Part shown: piece by piece, positions 5,023-63,948 of the stretch
Layout: every line of letters begins with the position of its first letter
Position numbering within the stretch: the first letter of the stretch is position 1
Assembly (NCBI GenBank): GCA_965649825.1
Contig: OZ287703.1
Location: 987,722 to 1,051,721 of the forward strand
Source: Penicillus capitatus
Taxonomy: Eukaryota > Plantae > Chlorophyta
Direction: 5' to 3'
DNA length: 64,000 nucleotides
The notes under the pieces: generated by a model
Database searches by the model: none
What the model was told of the DNA's origin: nothing
What the model saw: only the letters and a program-made list of their open reading frames with translations
Position numbers and translations under genes: made by a program

Positions 5023-5865
5023 ATGGCCAAATCCTACGCGCATCACTCTGCGAAGTCTTGGAAAGAAAAACGTTTATACTTTCCGTTTAACGGGACCTGC
5101 AAGTGCAGCAGCGGTGGTGACATCAAGCTCACATTTGAAAGTAGTTCGTCGTTGAGAACGCACTCCTCGTTGCTGAAGATGGCGTCTCCCGTCTTCGATT
5201 CGATGCTGACGGATTGCGCGGAAACGAAAACAGTTTCACTGGGACGCGCATCGCGAGAGGTATGGGTGCAGATCTTGAACAACCTCCATCCGTCTGGTCC
5301 TTCTTTCTTTCCCGATTTCGATCCGTTTCGAAACGTGAATAGACTTGTAAGCAGACAGTAGTATTATAAAGAATGAGAGACCGAGTGAATCTAGGCTGAG
5401 CTTCTGGACCAGGCAAGGAAGTTCGAACTGAAATCCGTGACCGATGTTATGGATGAAGTGATCTCGACGAGGATCCCAGAAGAAGTGTTCAACGCCGAAG
5501 TTTATAAGAAATGGGGAAAGTTCATCGAAGTGCAAGATATCGGAAATGACTTTGCTCACGTGTACAGCATTGTCCTTCAGTTCGAGCCCGAATTGCCTAA
5601 AAGTTCAGAGAGAGTTCGAGCGCATACGGTCAAGATTTTGGAGTTCGCCTGCAGACCGGGTGTCGCTTACAAGAATACTAATAGAACTCACGGGAATACA
5701 TCATGGCAATGCGTGTGCCATTTGTTAAAAAACGAAAATCGAAACGAAGCTCCATACGAAGCTCCCTCGTCAAAAAAGGAAGCCTTAAAGAACATGCTTA
5801 ACAACGCCAGCTTGGACTTCTGTAGAAAGTTGCTGGAAGAACTGTTAGACAAGTGTTTTTTCTGA
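5023..5865 (+). CDS. BTB/POZ-like family protein B1 (exons 5023-5346, 5395-5865)
   Basis: YFPFNG..GDIKLTF...LRTHSSLLKMASPVFDSMLTDC..WVQILNNLHP. Phase-0 48-bp GT-AG intron; exon 2 begins AELLDQARKF. Confidence 0.8.
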
Positions 5866-7362
5866 CATCGTCTCTCTACTTAGCGAGCTTTGTTCCCTGC
5901 TTGGCTGTCTGTTCAAAAGCCTTTCGAAGTACTAAGTCAGCGTTCGATTTAAAGTGAATTAGTGAATTACCCACCTGTCGATACATCTGCAGTATCATAA
6001 CAACCTAGAGGGCCCGGCGACACAGACAAAAAACCTAATGATCATGTTGCTCATCTCCGTTGCTGCTCTTTGTCTTTTGCGTTTTTGATCTGGCGAATAT
6101 TGGTTTGAAATCGCTTTACTGCTGCCAAGAGAATCCACGATGGAATAGTACGGAATCACATGTACCGCTGCACTACTTTTATCGTGTTTTGTCGTTTGGA
6201 TGAGACGAAACGAATGCAAGTCGCGCAGTTAGGTCCTCTGACGGTGGTTTACTCAATGCAAAACAATCGAGTAACACTGCGATTGGCCGCCGCTCAGGAA
6301 CTCAGTCTGGTGATGTTTTACAGATGCGTTGTCAATCGATGCTTCAATGGTTTGCCCCTGAAAGTAAAAACGGCGGCGTCAAAAAGGATATGTACGATAA
6401 CTGAAACAATCATAAGGACGGCGCCCTAACGGACGTAGTAGCTCCGTTCGAAAATTCGTCGCAGGGATCAGGGCAGTTTTATGTGTGTATGCACGCGTCC
6501 TGATTCCGTCTAGTTGGAGACTCGTCCATGTCTCCTCGCCAAACTAAGTTCTGTAATGTGTTACTAATGCTCACAGAGATCGCGCGTTCTTCAGTCGAGA
6601 AAGCACAGTGGACCGCGCATTTGATTCTCTGGATCATACAAAATGATAACCGTCCGGATGTTACCAGGATTCGCATCTCGAAAGTTGTTTCCTGACGCAT
6701 AAATACCGAATAAAAAAGACATCCACATTCCGACGCATTACCGGCACCTCGAGATCAGCCGCAGAAGGACGCGTCTGTTTTGCGAACCTATGGCGACGAA
6801 TCGTTTACCCGCCTTCGATGTCACGTCATTGTTTGACCGGATGGTCTTTTTATTCGACGCATGGTTGCCTCGTATAACGAGTTCTGCTTATTCCTACGTC
6901 TATTGCTATTGTCCTAACGCAGATCGTGTTTTAGAAGTCGTTTCTTCGGTGTCGTGGCTCTCTAAAGCTTGCCGCGCAGCTAGAAAGTCCAACAGTCGAG
7001 ATGACAGACAGTGACTCGAACTCCAAAACGAGTTCTTGGCTTTCAAACTATTTTCCTTTCGACAGCACGTGTAAACGCAGCCGCGACGGAGACCTTGCAC
7101 TAAAGGTTGCTGACGGGTCATCTTTGAAGACCCACGCTGCTCTGCTAAAAATGGCGTTTGAGATGTTCAATGTGAATGCTGACGGACTGCGAAGAAACTG
7201 AGATGGTGACGCTAGAAGAGACATCGAGGGAGGCACGGATTCTCATCTTAAACCGTCTCCATTCAGCTAGTCGATTGTCCTTCATTGATTTCAATCTGTT
7301 TGAGAATGTGAAACTACTCGTAAGTTAGTTCACGGATTGTGTGCATCGATCAAAGGAAAAGT

Positions 7363-7567
7363 TGACGGGTGCGCGTTTACGGTTGCGTCTCCGCGGACCG
7401 GACACGCTGTCCGCTTCCTGATGGGACGGCGGTTCGCGGAGACCGAGGACTATATAGCTGACGTCACCCCTCACCTGTAGCATTTGCATTCGCTCAGGTC
7501 GTGTTCCTCCGTCCGACGTCGCGCGTTCGCGCTGACCGCGACGCGCAAGTCGTATGCGATTCCCATA
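7363..7567. mobile_element. 205-bp solo-LTR-like insertion (family X, copy 2) in the B2 intron
   Basis: Homologous to 3146-3351 over its length. Begins TGAC, ends CCCATA. 5-bp direct repeat AAAGT at 7358-7362 and 7568-7572. Removing it restores an intron of about 52 bp. Confidence 0.8.
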
Positions 7568-7593
7568 AAAGTTGATTCTAGGCTGATGTTCTG

Positions 7594-8032
7594 TGTGGGT
7601 ACCACGCGGGAAGCGCCGCTTTAAACAACAATGCAGCGGAAGGCTTTGCAGCTCACAGAGCAAGGTTTTTGTTCAAAGGATGCGCCCATTTATATGATGA
7701 ATGTGACACGACTTCACAGGTCAAGTGAGTCAACTAACGCTCAGGGCAATAGGAAAGTGCCTTGACAAGACGTTGAGTGCATCTTTAAGAACAGAACCCC
7801 TCAAAATCGAGGCAGATGATGTGACTTCCACGCGAGAGCGTGACAGTAGGCGTATGCAAACGTCGCGTCGGACGATGGGACTGCATGACTATCAACTGTC
7901 GCGTCAAACGCGTACAGTAGATGCGTCTGACGCAATGTGAGCTTTCCCGTATTAGCGCGATTCATCCGTCTCGTTCTCCGCAGCTTTGAGCTCCGCGTCG
8001 TGGACGGCCCCACTGCATGACGTGGGCCCAGA
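7594..8032. mobile_element. 439-bp insertion in B2 exon 2 (solo LTR or MITE)
   Basis: 5-bp direct repeat TTCTG (7589-7593, 8033-8037). Imperfect terminal inverted repeat TGTGGGTACCACG / CGTGGGCCCAGA. Removal restores GCT GAT GTT CTG GAA CAG (ADVLEQ). Confidence 0.8.
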
Positions 8033-9311
8033 TTCTGGAACAGTCCAAAAAGTACAAGTTTGATAGGGTGTTCGAATCTGTGGAAAATGAAGTTTCCACC
8101 GAGATCTCAATGCAAATTACCCGTCGAGGACTGCCAAGTGCCCTCATCGAAGGCAATGTTTCGTAGGCGAATCTCTACATACAGTCTCGCACTACATTTC
8201 GAAACCGAGATGCCGAGAACCGTTGTTACAGTATGTGTACACATTATCAAGCTTCTTCGTTTAGTCAACGGCCAGCGCAAATGTGTCTCATCGCAACAAG
8301 CCTTCAAAGTAGTTTTTGCCCAGTTAAAGCAGAGTTGGATTATATTGATGGACGTGTTAGAGAATGTGAGTACCGATCTCATCCAGAAACTTGTGGCATA
8401 TCCGACACCGAATTGTTATAGTCGTTTCACGGATTTAATCCAAATTCTTGAACACCAACTACGATGACGTACTCAATTCTCGAGTTGCCTGTGGCGAGTG
8501 AAAAACTGTTCTGTCTTTAAAAGCATTCACAATTTCTGTTTTACAATGCACAACGCGTGCTGTCAATGAGTCACGTTTTGCTTATCGTTTGCAGAAGAGA
8601 GAGCTCAAAACACTGCAATCTGTAGAGGAACGCCGATGATCACCACAGTCGGCGATGTTACCGTCTATCGTAACCGCCTGTCGGAGGAGGACTCCATGGT
8701 GAAAAGCTCGCAACATTGCAATACTCAATCTTAGAAGTACCTACATAGCCGACGGAGATTCCTATCTGTTTAATCAGGTGGCGACGGCGACAACAGTTTC
8801 TCGTCATATCTGTCTATGATCTGATGTCTATGATCGACTCGCAGTTTTCTCCTGCTTGTCTCTCATCTAAATCAGACATTTTTCGACAGATACCTTATTC
8901 AAGTCGGGTTCTCATGCATCATCTCCTCCCATTGTCTGGATTGACGTCATTTTGAAACCATTGGAGAGAGTTGTTTGCGCAAACAGCTTTCCACGCGCGT
9001 CAAAAGACCTATCATCCAAGAAGAGAGCAGAACCGGCGTAACTGTTGCATGTCCAACGGCCGCTCCTGGGAAACTCGAACATTGCCAAGTGAGAGTTTTC
9101 TCTCTGGCTGAGCGCAAATCGCATAAGCCATTTGACGGCGCAGGGGGTTTACATATCCGGACGCTTTTCAGACAGACGATAACAGCACGTCTTTTTGCGC
9201 TACGTCTTGATAAGAACGACTCTGAACAGTTCGTTCACAACGATAGATCAGATATCCATTCGTCAGGAAATATGGATGTGACGTGTAGAAACCTTTGCCA
9301 CATGCACCAAC

Positions 9312-10290
9312 ATGCGGTTGGTCTGCCAAGCCCTTCGCGTCATCCGTATTCTCCATCGCCCGACGCTGACGAGACTTCAATGCTCCGTGAATGGACGACG
9401 TGTGTCTGAGCGCTCAGTCGCACCTCCTCTCGACGGAAGCATCGAGTCCAGTCCGGACGGAGATCTTACGCTGAAGTTTGATGACGGCACTTCTTCAAAG
9501 ACCCACGCATTCCTGCTTAAGCTCGCCTCTCCTGTCTTCAACACGCTGTTTACTGAATGGAACAAAAACAAACTATGGCATTAGAAGGCACGTCCAAAGA
9601 GACGTGGACGAGGATTCTGAATCGCCTGCATCCCGGCGTTCAATCTCTGTTTCTGGGGTTTGACCCGATGCAAGATACCAAACAACTGGTAAAAGGAGGC
9701 TTATGAATGGATCACGTCTGAGAGCAGAGTGCCCATCTAGGCGGTGTCAGTGGACAGCTGTCCACCTTCGTGCAGCTGTCCAAAGAATCGCTTAAATTCT
9801 TACAATTACTGTTCGAACAGTCTTTGTAATCCTTACGCCTTCGTCGTTAACCCGTTGTCCTTTGACAAACACGACAGCGGATATATTGGAGCAGTCGAGG
9901 AAGTTTGAGCTGCATTCCATGTTCCGGCTGATGGACGTCATCATCTCCGACAGAATCACTGAGAACATGAACGAAGCTCGAAATCTGCCGAGTAGCTTCG
10001 GCAGTAGAGGAGATCGACATTTGATTCTCTATCGCATAGTACTGCAGTTTGAGTCTGAACTTCCGAAGAGCAACGAAATCTTTTATGCACACTTAATCGA
10101 GGTCATCCAGGCCTTTGCTAAACCAGGATCATGGAGCAAGAAGTTTTATTCTCGCAATGATGTCGGTATGGAGCGTTCTCCTCTAATTAAGGCGGCGTTG
10201 ATGGACGTTATTGAAAGCGGCAGTTCCACATTTCACAAAAAAATCTTGGAGGCGTTGATCGAGAAATGTGTTGATACGACTTCATGGTGA
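9312..10290 (+). pseudogene. BTB family pseudogene B3 (paralog of B10)
   Basis: 1-nt deletion near 9560-9575 relative to B10 gives TAG at 9582-9584. A 132-bp insertion sits 4 nt into exon 2. Confidence 0.8.
9745..9876. mobile_element. 132-bp TGTC..GACA insertion with 4-bp TSD
   Basis: GCGG at 9741-9744 and 9877-9880. Empty site CTAG|GCGGATATA at 43463-43475. Contains the perfect 16-bp palindrome GTGGACAGCTGTCCAC (9750-9765). Confidence 0.8.
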
Positions 10291-10464
10291 TCGATAAATG
10301 CAAAAGCCATTGTCTGTGACGTTTACGCATCCAGTTGTATTGTATTGCGGAGACAGGCTGTGCACTTAATGATGCTCTTCTTTATGTTCTTGATGCTCAC
10401 GAACTACTTCATTTCGCTGAATGAAAGCTCCTGTGTGTGAATGCTCGTCATTGCAGAACCAGAC

Positions 10465-10580
10465 TGTCGAACAATAGATGTCACATCAGACTACATGACA
10501 AAAAAGATCGCTTGTACTGCATTCTTCTGAATTTTAAGGGTTTCGCAGTTCAACGTTTAAAACAACGGCTACACCGTGCA
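10465..10580. mobile_element. 116-bp TG..CA insertion with 4-bp TSD
   Basis: AGAC at 10461-10464 and 10581-10584. Empty site CCAGACAAACAAGG at about 44050-44063. Confidence 0.75.
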
Positions 10581-10865
10581 AGACAAACAAGGATTTCTGT
10601 AAGGATTAGCGTTCTATCGATTTCGAGTGTCGATGTCAGAGCTCTGGACGCCAGGCGATTCAGAGCTTCTGCAAATTAGACCACCACATCGAGTACATGG
10701 CAGGACAAAGAGGCGGCAGTCGACCCTTCCACCGACCGTCTGACGACGCATCTGATGAATGAGTGGACCGGGAAGCGGAAGAGGTGCGTTGACTGTGCCG
10801 AAACGACACTTAGTGGGAACGACGTTTCGCTTCACCGCCCAAACTGAGATTGTCCGAGACACGCG

Positions 10866-11595
10866 ATGACATGCAACGGCCTGCCGTCGAACTACTTTCC
10901 CTTCGATGGCAGCTGCGACTGCAGTCGCGATTGGGACTTCGCCCTCGAATTCGAGGACGCGTCGCTGAAGACGCACACCACTCTGCTCAAGCTGGCGTCG
11001 CCGGTCTTCGCCTCGATGCTGACAGACTGCAAACGAGCGAAAGCGCTGTGCCTCGAGGAAACGTCTCAAGAAGCGTGGATCGTCATCCTGAATCACATCC
11101 ATCCATCCGCCCCGTCCTTTTCCTCGCGCTTTAATATCCTCCAGAACATTGAGCTGGTGGTACGGACATTCTTGTCTCGCCGAATGCGAACGAGAATGGA
11201 CTTGTGCACAGGAAGACGTTTTGGAACAGGCAAGGAAGTTCCAGATGGACTTCTTGCTTGTGGCCATTGACGAGGCCATCCTGTCAAAGCTGCCGAAGGA
11301 ATCTCACGTCAACAGCGCTCCCTGTTTCAGTCATCTCCAAGATCGACACATCCCTCTGTACAGCCTTGCGGTTCGATACGAGTCAGAACTGCCTCAGACC
11401 ATCAATGGCATTCTGGCTCATCTCGTCAAGATTCTGCAATTCTGCTCCAATCAAAGCGCGGCTGATCTCAAAAGAAATCGGCAAAATGGCCATCTTCCCA
11501 AGAAACAGGCACTGATGAATGCTATCAAGGACGGGAGTGTCGATTTCTACAAAAGACTAACAGAGAACCTGCTGGAGAAGTTCTTCTTTCTCTGA
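10866..11595 (+). CDS. BTB family protein B4 (exons 10866-11159, 11212-11595)
   Basis: YFPFDGSCDCSRD..LKTHTTLLKLASPVFASMLTDC. Phase-0 52-bp intron; exon 2 begins EDVLEQARKF. Confidence 0.8.
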
Positions 11596-20773: not shown

Positions 20774-21553
20774 ATGTCGGACAACACGTCACCTTCCTCC
20801 GAGAGTTCTTCCCCGTCGAGCTATTTCCCATTTGACGGCAGCTGCGACTGCAGCCGCGACGGGGACCTTACGCTCAACTTCGCTGACGGATCTTTTCTGA
20901 AGACTCACGCCGCGCTACTGAAGATGGCGTCGCCCACTTTCAAAGCGATGCTCACGGACTGCGCAGAGACTGGAACGGTGGCTTTGGAAAACACATCAAG
21001 AGAGGCATGGGTTCTCATCTTGAACTGCCTTCATCCAGGCACTCGACATCTCTTCTCGAACTTCGATCCAATCGCGCAGACAGACTTATTGGTACGAACC
21101 TTGTAAACGGGTCGACTTGTACAGCGATTGTCTTCACAGGCTGATGTACTGGAACAATGTCGAAAGTTCACGTTCGTCCACGTGCTCGAAGGACTCGACT
21201 ACATGATCGCCGCGGAGATTCCTATAAATATGAGGAACGACTATCTAAAATGTCCGACTGGTTTCGGTGATCCCGATGCTCAACACTTGCGTCTGTACAC
21301 TCTTGCACTTGAGCGTGCGAAGGTATTGCCTAGAACCGTTGACAGTATAAGTGAACATATTGGACGAGTTTTGAGTTTTGTCGCCGGATATGGACATAAG
21401 ACCTCCGGCTCGAAGGTTACAAACACTCCTCCTCCGTTTGGTATGATGCCGCGTAGGAGTATTCTAATGAACCTTTATACAAAAGGAAATAGTCGTTTTC
21501 GAGACAAACTCGTCAGACAGATGATGGAGAACAGTAATTACATGAGGGACTGA
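20774..21553 (+). CDS. BTB family protein B5 (exons 20774-21091, 21140-21553)
   Basis: Family motifs; phase-0 48-bp intron; exon 2 begins ADVLEQCRKF. Confidence 0.82.
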
Positions 21554-21939: not shown

Positions 21940-22628
21940 ATGATGTCTGAGGCTGGCAAGACTTCTATAACGACTGCTTCCGAGATGACCTACTTCCCAT
22001 TCGTCGATGGCAACTGCGATTGCAGCCGTGATGGATATCGTTCTCTTATTCTCCAAGGGTTCCTCTCAGAAGACGCACGCCACGCCGCTCTCCTCGAGAT
22101 GGCGTTTCAGACTTTCCGAAGTATCTTGGGTGGGTGTTTGCGAGGACGGCGGTTCATTTTGGTGGAAGAACGTAAAGAGATATGTGGTTTGATATTTTCA
22201 GTCCTTTGCATCCGGCAGCATCCCTTACCGACGAACGAGCGCGTCGTCGGTTTAAACGATGTCGATCAGATGGTACGCATAACCTCTGCACCACTAAAGC
22301 TGTCAACTATTTGTAACTTGGTCTTTAGGCGGCTCTCCTGGGTCAAGCAAGAAGAGTCGCGCTCAATTTTCTCTTGAATTCTATAAATGCCGGAGGTGAA
22401 CGCGGCTTGTCAGCCCACGTTTATCTTACCGATTGTGAACGATCCATTAGAGGCAAACGTACGCAGAACGCAGTTTTGACTTGCCGAAGCAGAAAGTGTC
22501 TCCATGACGCGACGTCTTTGTCACATCCGAATCCGTTCTTGGTTTGCAGTTCAACTCAGTCCTCTGTTTGCAGTATCGCGTGTCGTAGGGGCGTCTGGTC
22601 ACTTCTTCTTGACATACGCGGCCAATAA
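21940..22628 (+). pseudogene. Degenerate BTB family copy B6 (intron 22273-22328)
   Basis: YFPFVDGNCDCSRDG and HAALLEMA survive, and exon 2 starts AALLGQARR. The intervening sequence is scrambled by frameshifts. Confidence 0.65.
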
Positions 22629-35891: not shown

Positions 35892-36684
35892 ATGGCAGAC
35901 AACAGCTTTACTTTGGCTTCTTTTCCCTTCGATGGCACCTGCAAGTACAGTCGCAACGGCGACACGATACTCAAGTTCAGTGACGGCTCTTACTTAAAAA
36001 CGCACGCCGCTCTACTGAAGATGGCATCTCCTGTCTTCGATTCGATGCTGACTGACTGTACAAACACGAAGACACTTGTGTTGGAGAAGACCTCTCGTAA
36101 AACATGGGTTCACATCCTGAACCATCTCCATCCAGCAGGATCACTCGTTTTTTCCAACTTTGATCGCGTCAATGGATTCGCCACGGATCTGCAAGAGGAT
36201 CACACATACGAGATAAAAGCGAAGTGCGACGCTTTGTCCGATATCCTCGAACAGGCAAGAAAGTTCAAGCTGGATTCTCTGTTTGCTTTCATGGACGATC
36301 TGTTGTTTTCTCTTTTCCCCAAAGAACTGGATTCCAACCTTGCACAGAGGCTTGCTAATAACAACCGCTCTCACGGCCGTCTCTATAACCTTGCACTCCG
36401 ATTTGAGTCAGAATTGCCTAAGACCAGTGAGAAAGTCCGTGGTAACATTATTAAGTACCTGCAGAATACCAGCCAATGCCGCAGCTGTGGAGCAAGACGC
36501 TTCCAAAGTTCATCATATCGTCAAAGAGTAAGAATAATAATCTACTCTTCTCGTTTTAGGATGTTTTGTTTAGAATCAGTCCAGTGAGGCCGAGAAGAAT
36601 TTTGCAGTGAACCTCATCGATGAAGGAAGTCAGGAATTCCACAAGAAGCTGATCAAGGATCTCATAAGCTCTATTCTGTTTTGA
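35892..36684 (+). CDS. BTB family protein B7 (exons 35892-36527, 36574-36684)
   Basis: Family motifs. No intron at the canonical position; a 46-bp phase-0 intron near the 3' end restores the C-terminal LIDEGSQEFHKKLIKDL motif. Confidence 0.78.
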
Positions 36685-39084: not shown

Positions 39085-39105
39085 CGACCTTGTCCATAAA
39101 TACTC
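39085..39105 (+). promoter_or_regulatory. TATA-like CATAAATA about 65 bp upstream of the B8 start (also upstream of B9 near 41292), preceded by TGACGT
   Basis: Position and conservation between the B8 and B9 promoters only. Confidence 0.3.
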
Positions 39106-39158
39106 TTAGGAAACGGCGGTTGATATTTGTCAGCTGCCCGAGTTGTTCGAGTCCTACG

Positions 39159-39926
39159 ATGACGGACAACACGTCGACTGCCGAGAAGAGTTCTCTTCCG
39201 GACTATTTCCCATTTGACGGCACCTGCGACTACAGCCGCGACGGCGACCTTACGCTCAATTTTGCCGACGGTTCTTTTCTGAAGACTCACGCCGCGCTAC
39301 TGAAGATGGCGTCGCCCACTTTCAAAGCGATGCTCACGGACTGCACAGAGACTGGAACGGTGACTCTTGAAGAGACATCGAGAGAGGCATGGGTTCTCAT
39401 CTTGAACTGCCTTCATCCAGGCACTCGAAATCCCTTCTCGAAGTTCGATCCTTTCAGACAGACGGACTTATTGGTAAACGAAACTAGTGGTCTCAGTCAT
39501 TACAGAGATATTCTATAGGCTGAGGTGTTGGGACAATCGAGAAAGTTCAAGTTCATCCCTGTGTTTGAACAAGTGGATTACCTTATTTCCACGAATGTTT
39601 CGAAGAAATTGCCTCATAGTCAAAGCCTTCCAACTGGTTTTAGCGATCCCAATGCTGTGCACCTGCGTCTTTACAGCCTTGTACTACAGTTTGGGACGGA
39701 GTTGACGACAGCCGCTGATGATATACTTAAACATGTCGGGGCAGTTCTGCACTGTTTTATCACCAAACGTGGATATGATGTTTTCGGCTCGCAGTTTTCC
39801 TCAAACTCTTATCATATGCTGCCGAGGAAGGATGTTCTGATGAACCTTTTAGAGAAGGCCGATGTTGGTTTTCACCAAAAGCTCTTAGCATATCTGATGA
39901 AGGACTGTAGTTACATAAGGGGCTGA
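39159..39926 (+). CDS. BTB family protein B8 (exons 39159-39473, 39519-39926)
   Basis: Family motifs; 45-bp phase-0 intron; exon 2 begins AEVLGQSRKF. Confidence 0.82.
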
Positions 39927-41355: not shown

Positions 41356-42153
41356 ATGACGGACGACGAGTCGACTGCCTCCGAGAGTTCTTCCCCGTCG
41401 AGCTATTTCCCATTTGACGGCAGCTGCGACTACAGCCGCGACGGCGACCTTACGCTCAATTTTGCCGACGGTTCTTCTCTGAAGACTCACGCCGCGCTAC
41501 TGAAGATGGCGTCGCCCACTTTCAAAGCGATGCTCACGGACTGCACAGAGACTGGAACGGTGGCTTTGGAAAACACATCGAGAGAAGCGTGGATTCTTAT
41601 CTTGAACCGCCTTCATCCTGCTGTTCAGTCATCCTTCCCCGATTTCGATCCGTTTTTGCATATGGAATTCCTGGTAAGCGAGCTTACGGATTATGTACAT
41701 CAATATAAGAAAACCTGATCCTAGGGTGATGTTCTGAAACAGTGCAGAAAATTTAAATTTGATGCAGTGTTTGCACCTATGGACTATGTCGTTTCTACGA
41801 GAATCTCGGAGCGAATTGCAATTGGAGGGCTTCCAAGTGCTTTCAACGAAGAAGATGTTTCGTGCGCAAGTCTCTACCGTCTTGCACTGCAATTCGAGAC
41901 GGAAATGCCGAGAACCATTGATAAAATACGTGCACATATTGTCAAGATTCTTCATCCAATCAGCGGCCTAGACGGATATGTCGATTCGAAGAAAAGCTTT
42001 AAAGTCGACGGGGACAAATTCTTGAGAACATATACTCGCTACACAAAGCCACGTAAGAGTAAACTTCTGGAAGTTGTCAAGAATGCTAGTGTCGATTTCT
42101 ACCACAAACTCTTGGCAGATTTGATGCAGAGGTATTCTCATTTGGCGGATTAA
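41356..42153 (+). CDS. BTB family protein B9 (exons 41356-41673, 41725-42153)
   Basis: Family motifs; 51-bp phase-0 intron; exon 2 begins GDVLKQCRKF. Confidence 0.82.
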
Positions 42154-43032: not shown

Positions 43033-43880
43033 ATGATGTCGGTTCGCATTCCCTTTCGCGTCGTCCGCATATGCCGTCGCCCGACGGCGACGAGATTTCG
43101 ACGCTCCGCGAATGGACGACGTGTGTCTGTGCGTTCGGCGATACCTCCTCTGGACGGAAACATTGAGTCCAGCCCGGACGGAGACCTTACGCTCACGTTC
43201 GACGACGGCTCCACTCTGAGAACGCACTCCTTTTTACTCAAGCTCGCCTCTCCAGTCTTTAACACGTTGTTTAGTGAATGCGAAAAGATCGAAGCTCTGG
43301 CATTAGAAGGCACGTCCAAAGAGACGTGGACGAGGATTCTGAATCGCCTGCATCCCGCCGTCCAATCTCTGTTTCTGGACTTCGACCCGATGCGCGATAC
43401 CAAACAACTGGTACGACGGAGGAGGCTTATGAATGGATCATGTCTGAGAGCAGTGTGCCCATCTAGGCGGATATATTGGAGCAGTCAAGGAAGTTCGAGC
43501 TGCATTCCATGTTCCGGCTGATGGACGTCATTATCTCCGACAGAATCACTGAGGAGATGAACGAAGCTCAGAATCTGCCGAACGGCTTTCGAAAGAAAGG
43601 AGATCGACATTTGGTTCTGTACAGCATAGCTCTCCAGTTCGAGTCTGAATTGCCGAAAAGCAATGATATCATCCATACACACTTGGTCGAAGTCATCCAA
43701 GCATTTGCCAAACCAGGAGCGTGGAGCGAGAAGTTCTATAAACGCAACGATGTCGGTATGGAGCGTTCTCCTCTAATTAAGGCGGCGTTGATGGACGTCA
43801 TCGATAGTGGCAGTGCATCGTTACACAAAAAGCTCTTGGAGGCGCTGATCGAGAAATGTGTTGATACGACTTCATGGTGA
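43033..43880 (+). CDS. BTB family protein B10 (exons 43033-43410, 43467-43880) with an Arg-rich N-terminal extension
   Basis: DGDLTLTFDDGSTLRTHSFLLKLASPVF; 56-bp phase-0 intron; exon 2 begins ADILEQSRKF. Confidence 0.8.
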
Positions 43881-44336: not shown

Positions 44337-45066
44337 ATGACATGCAACGGCCTGCCGTCGAACTACTTTCCCTTCGATGGCAGCTGCGACTGCAGTCGTG
44401 ACTGGGACTTCGCCCTCGAATTCGAGGACGCGTCGCTGAAGACGCACACCACTCTGCTCAAGCTGGCGTCGCCGGTCTTCGCCTCGATGCTGACAGACTG
44501 CAAACGAGCGAAAGCGCTGTGCCTCGAGGAAACGTCTCAAGAAGCGTGGATCGTCATCCTGAATCACATCCATCCATCCGCCCCGTCCTTTTCCTCGCGC
44601 TTTAATATCCTCCAGAACATTGAGCTGGTGGTACGGACATTCTTGTCTCGCCGAATGCGAACGAGAATGGACTTGTGCACAGGAAGACGTTTTGGAACAG
44701 GCAAGGAAGTTCCAGATGGACTTCTTGCTTGTGGCCATTGACGAGGCCATCCTGTCAAAGCTGCCGAAGGAATCTCACGTCAACAGCGCTCCCTGTTTCA
44801 GTCATCTCCAAGATCGACACATCCCTCTGTACAGCCTTGCGGTTCGATACGAGTCAGAACTGCCTCAGGCCATCAATGGCATTCTGGCTCATCTCGTCAA
44901 GATTCTGCAATTCTGCTCCAATCAAAGCGCGGCTGATCTCAAAAGAAATCGGCAAAATGGCCATCTTCCCAAGAAACAGGCACTGATGAATGCTATCAAG
45001 GACGGGAGTGTCGATTTCTTCAAGAGACTAACAGAGAACCTGCTGGAGAAGTTCTTCTTTCTCTGA
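44337..45066 (+). CDS. BTB family protein B11 (near-identical to B4)
   Basis: Same exon structure as B4; only two amino-acid differences seen (T/A and Y/F in exon 2). Confidence 0.8.
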
Positions 45067-50002: not shown

Positions 50003-50823
50003 ATGGCAGACAACAGCTTTACTTTGGCTTCTTTTCCCTTCGACGGCACCTGCAAGTGCAGTCGCAACGGCGACACGATACTCAAGTTCAGTGACGGCTC
50101 TTACTTAAAAACGCACGCCGCTCTACTGAAGATGGCATCTCCTGTCTTCGATTCGATGCTGACAGACTGTACGGAGACAAAGACACTTGTGATGGAGAAG
50201 ACCTCTCGTACGACGTGGGTTCATATCCTCAACCATCTCCATCCCGGCGGAACACTCTCTTTTTCAAACCTCGACTGCGTTAATGGATTTGCTATGAATC
50301 TCTCTTTTGGTATGCAAATCCCAGGGAAGAACGCCAACGAGACTGACAAGATGAAAGCGAAATGTGACACTCTGTCCGATCTGCTCGAGCAGTCGCGAAA
50401 ATTCGAGTTTGACTCGCTGTTTACCTTCCTGGACGATCTATTGTTTTCGATTTTTCCCAAGCAACTGGATCGAGCTTGCCTTACACACATGGCTGCTGAT
50501 GTCAACCGTCTGCACAGCCGTCTCTATATCCTTGCACTCCGATATGAGTCCAAACTTCCCAAGACCGGCGGTATAGTCCGTAGAAACATCATCATGTACC
50601 TGCAGAATCCTGGCCAGTGGTGCAATAGTGCAACAAGACACAGCACGTGGACCCCGATCTCTCAACAAGTAAGAATAATCTACTGTTCCAGGCTTAGGAT
50701 CATGGTTTATTGTAGAATCAGTCCAATCCCGAAAAGAATTTTTTAGTCGGTCTCATTGACGAAGGAAGTCATGAATTCCACAAGAAGCTGATTAAGGATC
50801 TCATAAACTCGACTCTGCTTTGA
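50003..50823 (+). CDS. BTB family protein B12 (exons 50003-50668, 50716-50823), paralog of B7
   Basis: Family motifs; 47-bp phase-0 intron near the 3' end. Confidence 0.78.
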
Positions 50824-55200: not shown

Positions 55201-58016
55201 GGTGATCTGGAGCGTCGGAAGACGGTCGCCTTCTATCGTAAACCGACGATTAAAAGCCAGAAACCCGAATTCTCAGCCGATGAACTGTTGTCGGGTGTTT
55301 TTGGTGGAGTATCCGATGACGGCTCAGAGATTTTCTTCGACGGCGGGCATTTGCACTTTCACTTCTCCTCCGAACAAGACAGGCATCGAATCCGATGCCT
55401 TACATTTAAGAATACAGAAGATAGTACCACTGAGTACAAGAAGCTCGATGCCAAAGATCGTGAAGACATCGACAAGTGCATTGAGAAGTGAGTGCATTCA
55501 TTGAATCCACAACTGCTAGATGCCGTCCTGCAGATTAGCAGAGAAGAACGGTCCTTTCTTTGTCAACACGCCTTACGGATCTGGACTGTCGTTTTTTCGC
55601 GAAGCCCTGAAGAATGGGGACAAAAGCGTTATGAAGTGTTGCGTTGCTCATGCCGAAAGGAGTTGCATTCTACTGGACGTGGGAGACGTTCCTTGCTTCG
55701 ACGATGTGAAAGAGGAAGTACTCGAGCCTCTCAATCGCAATGTCATTGTGAGTACATCTCGCACACTTTTTGTTTCAAGATGTACTAACTGTTTACTATC
55801 CAGAAAATGATCAAAGACTTTCTGTGTCTCTGCTTCAGCAGCACACCCACAAGCAATCGTACATCGCGAAGGGAAGAGCCGTTCAACATTCTGAGCGCAG
55901 CCTTGAACGAAAGGTCAAAGGAACGGGTCAAAGAGGCAGTCGAGTTGATATGTTCTCCGATCATACCGTTTAGAAGTGCAGCATGGCTTATGAAAACGTA
56001 TTACAAGCAACTGTTAAAGGATTACCCCGAGGTTGTGATGAGCATTCTTTCCCAAGAATCATTGTTTTTCGAAACTTGCCAACCCAGAATTTACGATGAC
56101 TTCTTGTTGAGTTCAGCATCTAGGGAAGATAGATTGCGTCCGGGTACATCGGACTCAGTGCTGAACTGGGAGGATGTCGACATTCGGCATCTTTTTGAGA
56201 AACATCGTGAAAGGACGGTACACGATACGGATACACCAACCGTGCAGACATCCGTGAAGTTCCTTCGTATTGAGGATGCGGCCAGGATTGGAATGGATGG
56301 AATCATTCGGCCATTGTTGATGCAGAATACGCCAATGGACGTCTTCCACAGCAAAGCCATTAAAGCTGTCATTCAGTACAAATGGTTAACGTTCTGGAGG
56401 ATAAAATGTTGTGCTGATGTCGTCTCTTATGCAATTTTTCTGGGTGTGTTTACTTTATATTCCGTTGTTGTTGCCAAATTCTCATCCATTTTGAAAGGAG
56501 ACAGTACAGATGAATTTCTTAAACTTTACTGTCCCATTGTGATGGCTATCTTTGGTCTGATAATGTTTTGCGAACAGCTTATTCGACTTTGTACATTCAT
56601 GAAGGATGGAAAAGAGTATTTTGGTAGCCGAATGAAAGGAGTGACCTACTTTTTCAAATCTGCGTCGAATTGGCTGGATCTCGTCTCTTGCATGTTTTTG
56701 CTACTGTGTATCCCAACCCTGCATATATTGGCCAGCTGTACATCAGATTCAAGGACAGCGTCATCTAACAAAAGCCAGGAAAGTTACGGTACTGCAATGG
56801 AACAAGCACTTTCGGCGACTCTGGCGGTGGAAGCCATACTCGTTTACACCAAGGTCATCTCAACCTTGCCAGATCCTCAATGAGATCTGCTGTCATTACA
56901 GGTTTGGTACTTTGCACAACCATTTCGAAAGTCCGGCGGCCTGGTGTTGATGGTTCAGAATATTGTTAGAGACTGCATCGCCTTTTTGGTGTTGTCCTTC
57001 TCGGTTGTCGTCGGATTCGGACTTGCCCTGCACATCCTCCATCGACACGCGCCCGAAGAGGCAGAAGCTAGTGCAGACGAGCCTAATGATGACCACGATT
57101 ACCGCGGCGATTATGGCTCCTTAGTCAAGAGTTTGCAGACCCTTTTCTATGCTCTTTTTGGGTTGTTTGATCCTGAGGTGCGTCTCATTCAGCAGTCGTC
57201 ATGGCTCAGTGTTCTCTTTTGCAGTTCCCTGACGTGAACGGTTTCATCACTCCGCTCTTTGCCATCTTCTTCTCTTTATATTTGATCGTTGCAGTCATCC
57301 TGCTGTTGAATCTTCTCATTGCTATTATGGGAGACACCTTTGACAAGGTGAAGAACCCAGAAGAGTCCCAGGTGCTGATGGCGAGGGCGCGTTTCATTGA
57401 CGCTGCGGAGGCGACGCAAAAGGGCAAGAATCGCGAGATGATTGAGTGAGATGTTGCACTATGACAGGACACTTGACATTCACTCCCTTGCACTGGCTGT
57501 AGGAAACAGACAAAGAAGTACCTGTACATTTTGGAGCGCAAGGATAACGATGCCGTTAGCAAGACATCTTCGTCATGGATGGAAGAGCTGCACATGATGA
57601 AGGAACAGTTCAGGTAGGTCGGCTGAAGGAGATGTTCTCTTCACTTGAAGCGAAAGGCGTGTCTATTAATGATCACGAGTATTGTTCTCTTTAGGTCGTG
57701 CATCAAGGAGGAATTGCAAAAACAGAATGAGACTCTGAAAGAGGAAACAAAAGAAGAAAATGCGATCCTGAAGGAGGAATTGAGAAAACAGAATGAGAAG
57801 CTAGATATTCTGCATCAACAAATCAATCAGATGATTAAACAAGGGAGCAAGATCTCGAAGGCGCAAGCGTCGACAGCAGAACGCGGTGTCGAACTGGACG
57901 ACACCGATATCTTGGCAACGAAGACATGTGATAGAAAACAAGAAGATACTGCAAGTCGTACAGAGCATGGCTCAGAATCAGAAAAAGCCAGTGACGAAGG
58001 ACCGTCGAACCTCTAG
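52272..58016 (+). CDS. TRP-family cation channel with a long N-terminal region containing WD40-like segments; multi-exon
   Basis: KAVIQYKW pre-S1, NWLDLVS, spliced TKVWYFAQPF..VQNIVRD..FLV..VVVGFGLAL, pore SLQTLFYALFG, S6 LLLNLLIAIMGDTFDKV, TRP-box-like ARARFI and a coiled coil. Spliced YLATGDVGGCVRVW near the start. 5' exons are approximate. Confidence 0.8.
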
Positions 58017-60136
58017 CATCAACCACAAGAGAAGGGGGTGAACATGTAAGCGGAGATGAGAGGGACCGGGCTGCAGCAGACAGATTAACAAGATCTGATG
58101 ATTCTGGGGTTGCAAACACAGCACCGAGATCGTTGAGGTGGACCTACAAGAACAAGACAGTAGATTCTTTGACAGATTCAAGCAGCATTCGACGCAGCAA
58201 AGACCGCCGGACTCACAAGGTCCAGAAATCTGGTCTTTTCCACCCTGGATGCTCGAACCGTTGAGCGACATTTTTTCTTGATCTTCTCTTTTTCTCTTTA
58301 TAAGGCGTCAAAGTGGAATACAAACAACCTTACCAGAAAGACAAACAACCTGGATGTGGGGATAAAAGCATCGATTTTGTGCATCGATTAACGTAAGATA
58401 CAGATTGCCAGAAGCGGGAACTTTCCTTTTTGTGACATACAATTGCGAAGAATAGAGAAACGCTTTGGTGTGGAATCTGGAGACGAAATATCGTTTGGCG
58501 ATCGTGAGGGAACATACATTACTCGGGTAGATTGAAGGGGAAGACCACAAGCGAATCTCATTGACACCGGCCATGCGGCTTTGGACACATTTGATCAATG
58601 CTCATCTATTTTCTGGCTTTTTTATGATTTGATGCTTTCGATCTTCTAGAAGAAAAAAAATTAAGTCGACTAAGCAAAAACCTCCTTGTGTTTGACGCTC
58701 AACCGAGAACGACTGTTAAATCTCCGAGTCTATTAAGACTGGCTCTGATCACTGTAGCGTAGAAGAAATCTTAGCCACAGGTCTCTCTGGCCTTGATACC
58801 TTCGGGAAGGAGTGACCGTGTGTGATCACTACTGGCCTTGGTCATCATTATTCACGTTGGCACGAATCTCGAAAGCTCTCCGACAAGCGTAGTCGTATTT
58901 GGCAACAGAACGTTGAAACTGTTGAACACATCAGATAGTTAGTCTGCTGTCCATCTTTATGCGTTTGCGGGTGTTCTGCTCGGGAGATGTCAGTAAATGT
59001 AAACCGGGCCATGAAGAAGCTCTTAATGCCTGTGACGCTCTCTTCTGTTGTGTCTGTCCATCACATGTCCATGGCAGTCTGAGAGATTCAAGCTTGGTTA
59101 GGCGTCGTTCTCATTCGTTGGAGACGTCTCGATCTCGTCACACCTGCTATCTGGATTCTAAGTCTTCTTACGACGTGAATGCCTTAAGATACGCACCGAT
59201 GCGATTCGGTACAGCGAGCAGGTTAAGGTTGCCGTTATCGCCAGAGGCTGCTGTTTCTTTGATCAGATTCTCGAACCTGCCTCTGCCCATCGAACTCTCG
59301 CTTTTGAATCGCGGAAGACATCCAGCGACTTCGCTGTCACATCACAATTCAAATATGTGGAAGTAAGTCCGTTGTACTCGTTCTCTGGCCGTGTTCCTTC
59401 GTAACCCTTTTACGTTATCGGTTCTAACAGTCTTCTTCCGATCGATGAGTCCCATAGCGTACACATCTGACAGAACAACAGACATTTCGCGATCGGCAAT
59501 GATCGTCGATCTGACAGAAGATCGGCGAGATTTCATGATACTGAATACTGCAGAGCTTGACACTGGAATCTATCCGTGTCCATTTCTCCATGAAAGAAGA
59601 GACAGGCCTTAATGGAACAGAAGAAAGAGTGACTGCTTCTCAAGGAGAGTGGTCAAACACTGCCGAGAGGTACACGTGTGTTGACCTTTGGTTACCTACT
59701 TGCATTCGTCGTTCACTTACGCATACTCTTATTCGGTCACAGGTCCGCATCGGAGGAATCCGAACAAAACTACCCAAAAGCGTCTTCGCGTCGCAGCGAC
59801 TTGGGATCTATGGTTTCCGGCAGATGTTCAATATCCGTTTCCGAGGCGCTAGATAGAGTCTTTCGCGTTCAACGGCGATTCCCTTTCGTCCAATACGTCT
59901 ACCGAAGGACTGTTTTCTATTTTGACGCCGTGGCAGGACATTTTGTCCTGCCTAATATGTCTTGTCGTCTTCCGGATCAGAGCCTCCGTATTGCTGTATT
60001 TGATGTATTTCTGAGCCGTGGTCGAAGGTCTGTTGCGATCGTTGTTCGATACGCGTCAAGTGGTTCTGAGTCTTTTCTGCGTTCGCCTTCAAAGCGAGGT
60101 CTAATACAGACGCCTTCTCGATTGTTTCGCAGTGCG

Positions 60137-60898
60137 ATGGTGCGTAGAACTAGCTCTCAAGCGAAGTGTCGACAAGGAATGTATTTTCCGTTCGACGGTA
60201 ACTGCGACTGTAGTCGCGACGGAGACATTGTGCTCACGTTCAGCGATGGCTCTCAACTCAAAACGCACTCCATGCTGCTGAAAATGGCTTCCCCCGTCTT
60301 CGCTTTGATGCTGACGGAATGCACAGACGCGGCGACAATTGCCCTTGAAGATACGTCTCCAGAAGTGTGGCTGCATATCCTGAATCATATCCACCCAGCG
60401 CCGCCGTCTCTGTCCCCCGGATTGGAACTCTTCAATGATGCAAACAAGATTGTAAGCCATTCTCTGTCTCGAGTGCCTTCGAAGCGCAATGGAATCTAGG
60501 TCGCGCTCCTGCATCAAGCAGTTAAGTACGATTTCAAGAACCTGACGGATTCTATAGATGAGGCTATCAAGACGATGGTCCCTGGACCATCGCCCAACGA
60601 AATGGCGAGTGCAAAGTTCTATAAACTAATTGAAGATTACAGTTTCGACGAAGAGAGAGTTAACCTATTTAAAGCTGCGTTTGAGTTCGAAGCTTTTCTG
60701 CCGAAGAGTGTCGAGAAAATCCGGAAACATGTTGTTGAGTATTTCAAGTTTTTCGCCGGAGTCAAAGCAGGGAAGTACAGGGGTCATCAGAATCCCGTCT
60801 TTCAAAGAGAAGCTTTGCAAGAGATGTTGCAGAGAGCCAGCATCGAATTTCACAAGCAACTCTTAGAAGATTTGATAGCGGAAGGGGGTATCTTCTGA
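60137..60898 (+). CDS. BTB family protein B13 (exons 60137-60451, 60500-60898)
   Basis: YFPFDGNCDCSRDGDIVLTFSDGSQLKTHSMLLKMASPVF; 48-bp phase-0 intron; exon 2 begins VALLHQAVKY. Confidence 0.8.
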
Positions 60899-61864
60899 CA
60901 TTGGCCTTGTGTCGATTAACGTCGATTTCTATTGAACGATCTGTTCGAACGCCTGTTTTGCTGTCAAAGACGTTTTAACTGTCCACCCAATCGCCCACAC
61001 ATCTGCAGGGTCACGATAGACTGCGGTGTTGATCACAGAGACAAGTCTGGACACGTTGCAGTCGTAGCTCAGTCGCCGAACTCAGTCATAGCCAAGGGTT
61101 GGCGATCGATGGTTGGCATCGCGGTCCTGCTGGCGACAGAATCTAGGATGGAATGGTACAGACTCGCATGTTCGGTCACGTAACGTTTCAAGAGGTTTTG
61201 TTTATAGGATGAGGCGAAACAAATGCAGGTCCGGATGGCAAGCTGCCTGAGAGCTGGAAAGTAGGACAGCCGAGTCTAGAGAACCAACTGGTAGTGAGTA
61301 TGAGTGTCGGTCATTGCTCAGGTGGCTCGGCCTCTTGACATTCTTCTGTGTGTCGCCCTTCCACGGATCAGAACACTATCCCATCTGAAATCCAGGGACT
61401 TAAGCAATCCAGCTCTTCTTTTGATTGCGGAATTCGCCGATCCACGCACTTACGTTAAAGCGTTTTCTCTGGCGATGACACGACAGGCCGATCCAAAATC
61501 GCCGAGATGATAGATGATTTAATTTACCCAACAGCGAGTGGGCTGCAATGTCAAACATCAAACCGCACGTCTACTTGTCTATCCGCCAGATCCTTTCGTC
61601 AAACGAGCTTTCCCGAAACGGCCTCAGTTATCGCAGTTCGAGACTCAAGAATCCACCGGGAACGACCAACAAAGGCAGAAACGCTGTCGCCGACTGACTG
61701 GTCTTCAGCATGAATACTGTTTCAATCGCCCACCTGTCCTCTCAGCCGTCTACCGGGCAAAAAAAGTCGAACCGAAGCAGCAGCTCCTCGCAAATATGCT
61801 CTCCGCGCAGTGACGATTCGCTCAGCCTTCTTTCTTCTGTACAACGGTGAGTGTCTGAGCGCAT

Positions 61865-62899
61865 GTGCTTCTGCGCAAGACAGCGCCGTTCGTTCGTCTC
61901 GCTTCCAGGAGCCATTCGTTCGCCAGACGAAGATTCTCGTCGCTTGCGCTGTACTTCACCGGTACCTTCGACACCCGAAGACGTTCAATCCTGGCTCATG
62001 AACATGATTGTCGGAGTTGTAGCGTTTCAGGACACTCGACAATCCAGACGTGGCAGTTCGTCTGGGGTCTGGAGAAGACTTTGAAACTGTTCTACGGAGA
62101 CACGAAGCTCAGCCAGATGGACACCGCTACCGCCGTCTATGCCTTTGATGTCGATCTCAGAAATCCAGTTCTCTTCGTCTACAACACGAGCCAACCGGAG
62201 CCGCACAGCGACGCCATCCTAATCCAGTCGCAGGACACTTTTTTCATTCCGGACAGAGCCCGAAGCTTCCAAACACACATAAGGAGGTCGAGGGACGAAC
62301 GCTACCTGGAGGCCCGTCGACAAGACTTCTATATTCGCGACCTCGGTCGCGCCAGCAGCGCCTTGCCTGCAGTCCATGCCGCGAAGAGATTTACTGCCGT
62401 CAATAACAAGACCGCACAGTACGACTGCATCGACGGAGGGTTGGTTGCGCCAAATCCGACGCTGAATTCGTTGATGTTCATGCTGAGCATGAACACGATC
62501 AGTGAGGTCGACAGAATTGCGACTCTGTCGCTCGGAACAGGCGCCGTGGTTGGCGATTACGCGTTGAATGCAGACAGCCCCTGGCGTTGGCTGACTTCCT
62601 TAGACCTTTTCAGAGTCGTCATCGATTGCGGCAGCAAAGTCCCGCAGACCAATCTGTATGACATGTTCTATGATCAATTGCATGTCAGAGACAAACAGTT
62701 TCTGAGAATTCAGCCACTCACAAACGACACCTCCAACTATGCAGAGGCTCTCAACTCAATCACAGATGTCAGTCAGCTGGATATGTTGAAGACGATTGGT
62801 GAACTGGTTGCGAGGGACTACACGGATGATCTCGACGATTTTATTGAGGAGTTCATTTTCGGAACCGAAGAGAAGGACCCGGAGATGAAGAAGGCTTGA
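61865..62899 (+). CDS. Patatin-like protein 2 (C-terminal two-thirds clear from about 62065; 5' structure unresolved, possibly decayed)
   Basis: GLEKTLKLFYGDTKL, RASSALP, CIDGGLVAPNP and LSLGTG. No GxSxG or DGGG exon could be reconstructed upstream. Confidence 0.7.
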   Translation: MLLRKTAPFVRLASRSHSFARRRFSSLALYFTGTFDTRRRSILAHEHDCRSCSVSGHSTIQTWQFVWGLEKTLKLFYGDTKLSQMDTATAVYAFDVDLRNPVLFVYNTSQPEPHSDAILIQSQDTFFIPDRARSFQTHIRRSRDERYLEARRQDFYIRDLGRASSALPAVHAAKRFTAVNNKTAQYDCIDGGLVAPNPTLNSLMFMLSMNTISEVDRIATLSLGTGAVVGDYALNADSPWRWLTSLDLFRVVIDCGSKVPQTNLYDMFYDQLHVRDKQFLRIQPLTNDTSNYAEALNSITDVSQLDMLKTIGELVARDYTDDLDDFIEEFIFGTEEKDPEMKKA

Positions 62900-63509
62900 G
62901 GTCTTTCTTTATTCTTTAATGGAACGAATCCATCCTGTACACAAACGGAAGGCACAGGCATCTTGCGACTGAATTCATAATTCAGGGGGAGTTCAGATTG
63001 GAAAACTGACAAGGTTTTTAAAGGGAGTCCTCTGTTATAGAGCACGAGCAGACTGCGTCTTTACGCATCGTCGGATGATCTACTACTCTATGGGTCTCCG
63101 GTCGCGACAGGTGGTTTTTTTCTTAGCTCGCATCTCAAGATACATGGGACACCGGAACCGTCAGTAGTAGGGACGTCTTTTTCAAGAAGTGTTCACGGAA
63201 AGAGCGTTCCGAGATGGTCACCTGTGTCTCCTGCCTTACGAATAGACCCGTTGCCACGCGCATCTGGCTGTGGGCTATCGAATTCTGAACACGAGTTCAG
63301 CAAAATCACAATTCCCACGTGAGGTGTACAGCCGCGAGGAACCGTTCTCTGCATCCGAAGATTTATCTGCGCATGTGAAATGACGTTGACGGATAGTGAG
63401 GCGCTCGCACCACAAGGTCTCCTGTGCCAATCGTCGCCTTTTTCGCGCGTTTGCTGTGGATTACGCGTTCGTCGCGGTAGATTTATTCGGCACCCGCAGA
63501 GCTTGCCCA

Positions 63510-63948
63510 ATGATTCAAGAATCTTCGACTTACTTCCCCTTCGACGGCACCTGCAAATGCAGTCGCGACGGGGACACGACGCTCATATTCGATTCCGGCA
63601 CGTCCTTGAAAACGCATTCCGCTGTGCTAAAGATCTCCTCTTCCGTCTTCGATTCGATGCTGACAGACCGTATTGGGCTGAAGCAACTGACGCTTACAGA
63701 AACTTCTCGCGAGACGTGGGTACACATCCTGAACCATCTTCATCCGGCCGCAACACTCGTTTTTGGACCCTTCAATCCTGTTTATTATGTCGGTCAACTG
63801 GTGAGGGTTGTGTTTTTGAACGCGGAAAGTCATGTGTGGTGTCCAGACCGATTTGTTGGAACAAGCAAAGGTGTTCTCGTTGGCATCACTATTCACCCTA
63901 GTTGATGATGCACTGTGTCGCGAGAAGATTCTACTGAGCCAAGATTGA
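63510..63948 (+). pseudogene. BTB family copy B14 (exons 63510-63800, 63847-63948), apparently truncated
   Basis: Family exon 1 is intact. Exon 2 (TDLLEQAKVF) stops after 33 codons, versus about 130 in paralogs. Confidence 0.6.

Follow-up and report, generated by a model that had tools for sequence, protein, structure and literature searches.

A co-oriented array of compact BTB genes with a predicted BACK-like tail in Penicillus capitatus

A stretch of 64,000 nucleotides (nt) from the green alga Penicillus capitatus (GenBank assembly GCA_965649825.1, contig OZ287703.1, forward-strand positions 987,722 to 1,051,721; hereafter the window) contains an array of small, spliced genes that encode proteins with a BTB/POZ domain. 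We detected the copies with a motif scan and with tblastn, using one intact copy as the query, and labelled them A to N in their order along the window, whose coordinates are used throughout. The tblastn search returned exactly 14 exon-1 matches, every one of them on the plus strand and all within about 59 kilobases (kb), with starts at 5047, 7049, 9426, 10893, 20822, 21991 and 35922 for copies A to G and at 39159, 41404, 43147, 44364, 50033, 60137 and 63531 for copies H to N. Open spliced models were obtained for ten copies (A, D, E, G, H, I, J, K, L and M), and the other four (B, C, F and N) are disrupted by frameshifts, insertions or truncation. These results bear out an earlier reading of this DNA (the sequence-only reading), which had counted 14 co-oriented copies in 64 kb, about ten intact and four disrupted. 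That reading was also right that the proteins are compact, but the spliced models span 224-264 amino acids (aa) rather than 240-270 aa. For comparison we used public contigs of the ENA metagenome assembly ERZ25074695, one of which is 945 kb long, and a related organism in ENA assembly ERZ26696514, which we refer to as the sister organism.

The array is nuclear, and its gene structure is uniform across most copies. Introns are spliceosomal, of the GT..AG type and 45-56 nt long, and intron 1 occupies a conserved phase-0 position. The leader YFPFDGxCxxSRDGD, proposed as the family signature, or a close variant of it is present in 12 of the 14 copies, and C and J have PPLDGxIESSPDGD in its place. 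Copy A (5023..5865; 264 aa) consists of exons 5023-5346 and 5395-5865 around an intron of 48 nt (GTAAGC..CTAG), and its product matches the Pfam BTB profile. Copy D (10866..11595; 224 aa; exons 10866-11156 and 11212-11595), which served as the template of the structure model described below, has an orthologue in the sister organism (P0002) and a recent duplicate in copy K (44337..45066; 224 aa; exons 44337-44627 and 44683-45066). Two-exon structures were likewise found for E (20774..21553; 243 aa; exons 20774-21091 and 21140-21553), H (39159..39926; 240 aa; exons 39159-39473 and 39519-39926), I (41356..42153; 248 aa; exons 41356-41673 and 41725-42153) and M (60137..60898; 237 aa; exons 60137-60451 and 60500-60898). 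Copy J (43033..43880; 263 aa; exons 43033-43410 and 43467-43880), the start codon of which is uncertain, carries its variant leader as PPLDGNIESSPDGD.

The remaining intact copies, G (35892..36684; 248 aa) and its paralogue L (50003..50823; 257 aa), have no spliceable intron 1 and contain in its place an in-frame coding segment of 54 nt in G (36180-36233) and 81 nt in L (50291-50371). The first bases of the segment in G, GCCACGGA, are similar to the GTACGGA donor found in D and K, and intron 1 is retained in N, the nearest relative of G and L; judged from these sequences, the in-frame segment is possibly an exonised intron. Copies G, L and N also form the only subgroup with a second phase-0 intron, which is 46-47 nt long, lies near the C-terminus (GTAAGA..TTAG/GTAG) and is located at 36528-36573 in G (46 nt), at 50669-50715 in L (47 nt) and, outside the window, at about 64302-64348 in N. 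All copies outside this subgroup read straight through that position.

The four disrupted copies differ in the extent of their decay. Copy B (7001..8467) is a pseudogene: exon 1 is frameshifted at ~7169-7176, 706 nt (7320-8025) stand where an intron of about 48 nt would be expected, and the remnant of exon 2 carries a second frameshift (~8150-8180). Copy C (9312..10290), a pseudogene and the paralogue of J, has the leader PPLDGSIESSPDGD, a frameshift at ~9560-9575 and an insertion of 136 nt (9741-9876) in the opening codons of exon 2. Copy F (21940..22377) is a degenerate relic, in which an open reading frame (ORF) of 145 aa preserves a decayed leader and the N-terminus of the BTB domain and exon 2 is not detectable. 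Copy N (63510..64000, continuing to ~64456 past the window) has intron 1 at 63801-63846 and an insertion of about 150 nt in exon 2 (63917-64062), which introduces an in-frame stop at 63946-63948. The array had previously been taken to end at 63948, which is the premature stop of N. The N insertion is absent from the orthologue in the sister organism and is flanked by an imperfect repeat of its target (TTGATGATGCACTGT / CTTGACACACTGT). An intron that would rescue N was considered and rejected, as no canonical donor/acceptor pair gives a sensible frame. The insertions in N and C are unrelated to each other and single-copy, and the proposal that those in C, N and B are copies of a miniature inverted-repeat transposable element or an introner was also rejected, with those in C and N unique in all sequence compared. 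Only partial matches were found for the B insertion, at window positions 3146-3244 and in the 163-184 kb region of the 945-kb contig.

The products of all ten intact models match the Pfam BTB profile PF00651 above its gathering score. The best match is that of copy M (E 3e-9; 37.5 bits against a cut-off of 20.5), in which residues 30-130 correspond to model positions 12-108 of 110. The intron of copy M falls after residue 105, which indicates that the BTB fold comprises exon 1 together with the first ~25-30 residues encoded by exon 2, and exon 1 therefore does not correspond to the BTB domain by itself, as had been assumed. A family profile also matched SPOP (E 6e-5, positions 26-142) and KBTBD4 (E 7e-5, positions 31-166), with the latter alignment extending into the KBTBD4 BACK domain. 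A first AlphaFold model, based on an alignment of the ten paralogues only, reached a mean predicted local distance difference test (pLDDT) score of 63 and was excluded from fold searches. With an alignment of 62 sequences that included public family members, AlphaFold2 produced a model of copy D with a pLDDT of 89.1 and a predicted template modelling score (pTM) of 0.85. In this model the leader is irregular but well placed (pLDDT 96 at residues 11-20), the BTB core contains strands at 25-28, 33-36 and 60-62 and helices within 38-123, and five helices follow the core (137-152, 158-176, 180-188, 195-201 and 207-222). Foldseek searches of the PDB with this model gave a probability of 1.00 to SPOP, KLHL3, ZBTB8A and other BTB structures, which together with the profile matches substantiates the initial assignment to the BTB/POZ group. 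We conclude that the family protein consists of a conserved, structured leader (F-D/N-G-x-C-x-x-S-x-x-x-D), a BTB/POZ core and five C-terminal helices. We also considered whether the leader Cys might form a zinc site with three other residues (His in LKTH, Cys in TDC and His in LHP), but dropped the idea because conservation is incomplete: across the wider family the leader Cys is present in 45 of 51 sequences and the first His in 41 of 49, and the other two candidate ligands are not conserved.

The sequence-only reading had described the proteins as BTB-only with a short variable helical tail and had placed the recognition surface in the exon-2 domain. The top Foldseek match of the copy D model is the vaccinia A55 BTB-BACK protein in complex with Cul3 (6i2m_A; E 2e-5 over 207 aligned columns), followed by SPOP, KBTBD4, KBTBD2-CUL3, KLHL3-Cul3 and NPR1, for most of which 200-230 columns are aligned. 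Because these matches cover the whole length of the model, and because the KBTBD4 profile match also extends past the BTB core, the five C-terminal helices are predicted to fold like the 3-box and a shortened BACK domain of CUL3 adaptors, which does not support a novel recognition domain. No second Pfam domain was found in the ten intact models, with 100-130 residues left between the BTB core and the C-terminus, which upholds the earlier statement that the copies lack a MATH, Kelch or ankyrin partner.

The combination of a BTB core and a helical extension, aligned over 200-230 Foldseek columns, is shared with SPOP, KLHL3, KLHL11, KBTBD2, KBTBD4 and A55. However, the array proteins differ from the SPOP, KLHL and KBTBD adaptors in that they do not carry a MATH or Kelch substrate domain and in that sequence identity is just 13-20%. 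Whereas KLHL11 has six BACK helices, the array proteins have three after the putative 3-box, and in place of the N-terminal alpha1 helix of SPOP- and KLHL-type proteins they have a family-specific leader without regular secondary structure. The closest architectural analogues are the compact viral BTB families: those of giant viruses (Klosneuvirus-like, Orpheovirus and Medusavirus BTB(-BACK) proteins) and the truncated poxvirus BTB-Kelch proteins, which share a similar size (200-290 aa), the two-part architecture and the many paralogues per genome. This likeness exists at the level of the fold only (9-19% identity), and the viral genes are intronless and lack the leader motif, whereas the array genes are cellular, spliced and syntenic in two organisms.

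The viral likeness raises the question of whether the cluster is an endogenised giant-virus element, a view that gains from the similar scores of many BTB(-BACK)-only proteins of 200-290 aa in a Foldseek search of viral models and from the patatin-like, F-box/leucine-rich repeat (LRR), ankyrin and ubiquitin genes nearby. We consider this origin very improbable, because nearly all copies have spliceosomal introns at conserved positions, the guanine-plus-cytosine (GC) content is uniform across the window at about 49%, and no viral hallmark domain was found in any ORF scanned. In addition, the neighbours are ordinary cellular genes (ABC transporters and a TRP-like channel, with DEP, CBM20 and legumain in flanking loci), the locus is syntenic with that of a second organism, and the Caulerpa nuclear proteome contains homologues. 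Published GC values are 52.4% for Ostreobium and 40.4% for Caulerpa, and that of the window is nearer to Ostreobium, which is no more than a hint of affinity.

We compared rates of nonsynonymous and synonymous divergence (dN and dS) between orthologues and among paralogues. Over the whole gene, dN/dS relative to the sister-organism orthologue is 0.14 for both D (dS 0.43) and J (dS 1.0), and for both genes the values are alike in the N- and C-terminal halves. Every paralogue pair has a dN/dS below 1, with recent pairs at 0.25-0.71, which is above the orthologue values, and for most non-recent pairs dS exceeds 1 and is saturated in both halves, which points to a repertoire of mostly ancient origin that is not being rapidly renewed. 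The intact members are thus under ordinary purifying selection, and by evolutionary criteria the family is functional. That the family is instead decaying, with ORFs that are open by chance or recency, would fit the four broken copies of 14; it is scarcely credible for ten open frames of 224-264 codons that have kept intact splice sites despite saturated synonymous divergence, and for genes with an orthologue dN/dS of 0.14.

Paralogues diverge mostly in the half encoded by exon 2. Their N-terminal halves are 40-84% identical, whereas identity between the C-terminal halves is 21-38%, apart from G/L (61%) and D/K (98%), and the least conserved stretches correspond to residues 121-140 and 171-190 of copy D. 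Because the divergent half of each paralogue is itself conserved between species, there is some support for specificity in the exon-2 half, as had been suggested, but not for an arms race. The sequence-only reading had further likened the family to the MATH-BTB adaptors of nematodes and grasses and to a role in defence. Those adaptors have undergone lineage-specific tandem expansions, and the array resembles them in its clustered, co-oriented paralogues, its pseudogenes and its changes in copy number, but it lacks MATH and the positive-selection signal was not found by simple pairwise dN/dS tests. The view that the family is a defence-type repertoire of adaptors, evolving fast under diversifying selection and presenting the exon-2 domain as its arms-race recognition surface, would agree with the tandem expansion, the pseudogenes, the copy-number variation between haplotypes and species, the much greater divergence of the exon-2 half among paralogues and the higher dN/dS of recent pairs (0.25-0.71). 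We nonetheless consider it improbable, because orthologue dN/dS is 0.14 in both halves, no pairwise value exceeds 1, and most paralogues are old with saturated dS. Furthermore, the BTB genes are 77-87% identical in nucleotide sequence to those of the sister organism and their neighbours 76-88%, so the array shows no excess divergence.

We also examined how the array has been remodelled. In a self-comparison of the window, the block that contains C and D (8456-11653) matches the block that contains J and K (42170-45124), with identity that climbs from 81% to 98% along the block, which indicates gene conversion; between D and K, dS is 0.03 in the 5' half and 0.01 in the 3' half. Copies G and L are 91% identical in the upstream region and 5' part and 76% in the 3' part. 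Among copies E, H and I, nucleotide identity (81-92%) is limited to the stretch from the upstream region through exon 1 (20484-21094, 38858-39476 and 41146-41618), and blastn detected no similarity beyond the intron. Their dS is four to six times lower in the 5' half (0.20-0.33) than in the 3' half (0.77-2.0), with dN/dS below 1. Both the gap in dS and the confinement of identity to the 5' region indicate gene conversion of the promoter and exon 1 in E, H and I, and we attribute the discordant dS of the two halves to this process. Shuffling of exon 1 and exon 2 was rejected, as the groupings E/H/I, G/L and D/K are identical in both halves. The proposed birth-and-death evolution thus holds with respect to the recent duplicates, the four pseudogenes and the differences in copy number, but it is not pure, as the 5' halves show concerted evolution. 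Taken together, a single locus records unequal crossing-over, gene conversion restricted to exon 1 and, as the G/L segment suggests, intron loss or exonisation.

Segmental duplication by unequal crossing-over shapes the array, as seen in the C+D and J+K blocks and in a unit of 33.5 kb. The distance from A to M is 88.1 kb in the 945-kb contig vs 54.7 kb in the window, and an ABC gene comes after a K-like copy there, just as one comes after D in the window, which indicates that the contig contains a second 33.5-kb D..K unit where the window contains one. The window matches the 945-kb contig at 100% over 49678-64000, 1-5921 and 8507-13702, and at 99.6% overall across 1-15374, but at only 97.5% across 25879-45124; positions 32248-39421 match a separate 7.2-kb contig of 10x coverage at 100%. 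The window and the 945-kb contig look like different haplotypes or strains, one of which has an extra D..K unit. Four further co-oriented family members are located 28-48 kb past the end of the window (in the 163-184 kb region of the 945-kb contig, at ~1150, ~7192, ~8626 and ~10025 there), of which P0006 is intact, and the cluster therefore exceeds 14 copies. In the sister organism, syntenic orthologues are present at 75-87% nucleotide identity, gene order differs, and there are two N-like copies, each adjoining a patatin-like gene; these patatin-like and N-like BTB pairs are tandemly duplicated with a period of about 9 kb.

An exhaustive HMMER profile search of 1.84 billion representative proteins was used to delimit the family. 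It yielded 155 clusters with a cut-off of E<=1e-3 and 64 with a cut-off of E<=1e-10. The leader F[DN]GxCxxSxxxD was recognised in about 45 clusters, and the number that share the leader is put at about 60-80 overall. Many of the matches are single-exon metagenome fragments, and the weaker ones are generic BTB proteins. A word-indexed protein search under-reports the family, returning three proteins for a single copy and eight for the 62-sequence profile. Among 30 clusters that were looked up, the only named source was Caulerpa lentillifera, with seven proteins of 226-265 aa (EukProt EP00210: g1008, g1009, g3198, g3200, g3222, g7471 and g7523), and the gene numbers g1008/g1009 and g3198/g3200/g3222 suggest that the Caulerpa copies are clustered too. 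The Caulerpa proteins resemble those of the array in length, in the leader (FDG/FNG-x-C-x-x-S/C-x-D-x-D) and in profile matches that cover the whole protein (e.g., P0018, E 2.9e-30, positions 17-234), but are only 21-30% identical to copy D. This siphonous green alga also has the nearest named relative of the neighbouring ABC transporter, and from these distant relatives a bryopsidalean-like green alga would be deduced as the source with moderate confidence.

The genome papers on bryopsidalean algae that we searched, including that on Caulerpa, do not mention BTB or POZ, and literature searches on Caulerpa and BTB returned no relevant description of the family. The Caulerpa genome paper, which neither annotates nor discusses the family members, reports only an expansion of ubiquitination terms of the Gene Ontology (GO), and the family may account for part of that expansion. 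The suggestion of a possibly undescribed, lineage-specific family is therefore consistent with the literature searched, but the family is not confined to one organism, as it also occurs in Caulerpa lentillifera and in numerous metagenomic sequences. Since BTB families often undergo lineage-specific expansion, the cluster is unsurprising in itself. We conclude that the array represents a lineage-restricted branch, not previously described, of a type of gene-family expansion that is very common, and not a new kind of system; what it adds is a family so far unannotated, in which a leader, a BTB domain and a short BACK-like tail make up a protein of about 230 aa.

Based on the predicted fold, we favour, with moderate confidence, the reading that the array encodes dimeric BTB and BACK-like proteins that would dock on CUL3 and hold their specificity in the divergent C-terminal half. 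In known adaptors the BTB domain and the 3-box form the module for CUL3 assembly (Canning et al., 2013; PMC3597819). By this analogy, the BTB domains of the array proteins would mediate dimerisation, and the BTB/3-box surface would dock on the N-terminal domain of CUL3. In those adaptors the 3-box/BACK region contacts CUL3 and serves assembly, not the binding of substrates. Paralogue-specific function would reside in the divergent C-terminal helices and loops, at about residues 121-140 and 171-190 of copy D, which could bind substrates directly or recruit other proteins.

Several observations weigh against this reading. The Pfam BACK profile PF07707 gave no match at E<=0.01 in any of the ten models, and the template modelling (TM) scores to BTB-BACK structures are 0.45-0.54 with a high root-mean-square deviation, so the tail is to be described as BACK-like and not as a demonstrated BACK domain; the putative 3-box (helices 137-152 and 158-176) is covered by the A55, SPOP, KLHL3 and KBTBD alignments at these same scores. 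In known complexes the alpha3-beta4 loop clamps helix H2 of Cul3 through Met-233 of SPOP or Phe-130 of KLHL11 (PMC3597819). In the profile alignment, the corresponding loop has about three residues fewer in the array proteins than in SPOP and KBTBD4, and its C-x-E triplet is kept in about six of ten paralogues, with an invariant Cys and a variable acidic residue. As for the repertoire itself, the window is identical throughout to no single public contig, and its mixture of 100% and 97.5-99.6% matches implies that copy number depends on haplotype or assembly.

The short and poorly conserved Cul3-clamp loop, together with the absence of a substrate-recognition domain from the intact copies, would also be expected if the proteins were CUL3-independent or regulatory BTB-BACK modules, such as heterodimer partners, decoys, CUL3 caps that deliver no substrate, or scaffolds outside the ubiquitin system. 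The BTB half, at 40-84% identity among paralogues, would permit heteromers, and a preprint on Btbd6 and Plzf offers a precedent for substrate recruitment through BTB heterodimerisation (bioRxiv 10.1101/575910). We regard such regulatory roles as a serious though unlikely alternative, since all whole-length fold matches are to CUL3 adaptors, including the 3-box, and since the C-terminal half is conserved between species (dN/dS 0.12-0.13), which fits specific binding better than a generic cap. A more specific version of the CUL3-docking reading is that the proteins are minimal CUL3 receptors of siphonous green algae, in which the BACK-like half would be the substrate surface, the leader would replace the alpha1 dimerisation element, and a role in self/non-self recognition, wounding or virus response might be played in giant multinucleate cells; this version is speculative and, in our view, rather doubtful. 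Either way, the array is a natural setting in which to test whether a BTB-BACK module to which no substrate domain is attached can serve as a complete CUL3 receptor.

The BTB genes are interspersed with other genes. Rfam and transfer RNA scans of the window found nothing. An ABC-transporter gene, the nearest named relative of which is in Caulerpa lentillifera (42% identity), is represented by duplicated segments at 8-3110 and 13821-16940 (91.5% identity), which flank the A-D sub-cluster on both sides. Ankyrin-repeat ORFs are located on the minus strand at 31074-32290, with a tandem periodicity of 157 nt (7.8 copies) that fits one 33-aa repeat (99 nt) plus an intron of about 58 nt, and a trypsin-like protease segment (33213-33536, minus) lies just upstream on the same strand. 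This ankyrin-repeat gene, at 31.0-32.5 kb on the strand opposite to the array, is a separate gene and not a partner of the BTB proteins. Other genes of the ubiquitin system inside the cluster are an F-box-like and LRR gene at 45818-47441 (plus), with a weak match under the Pfam cut-off, and a gene at 18582-19277 (minus) for a protein of 231 aa with an N-terminal ubiquitin domain (E 6e-26). Patatin-like phospholipase ORFs at 47854-49071 (minus) and 61865-62899 (plus), also weak matches under the Pfam cut-off, adjoin BTB copies, as does a weak patatin-like ORF at 8021-9499 of sister-organism locus L002. Finally, a large minus-strand gene at 22494-29600, which has ORFs of 365, 373 and 769 aa with internal repeats of about 150 nt and no Pfam match, has a second copy past the window at ~65655-70500 (87% identity) and a counterpart in the sister organism (79%).

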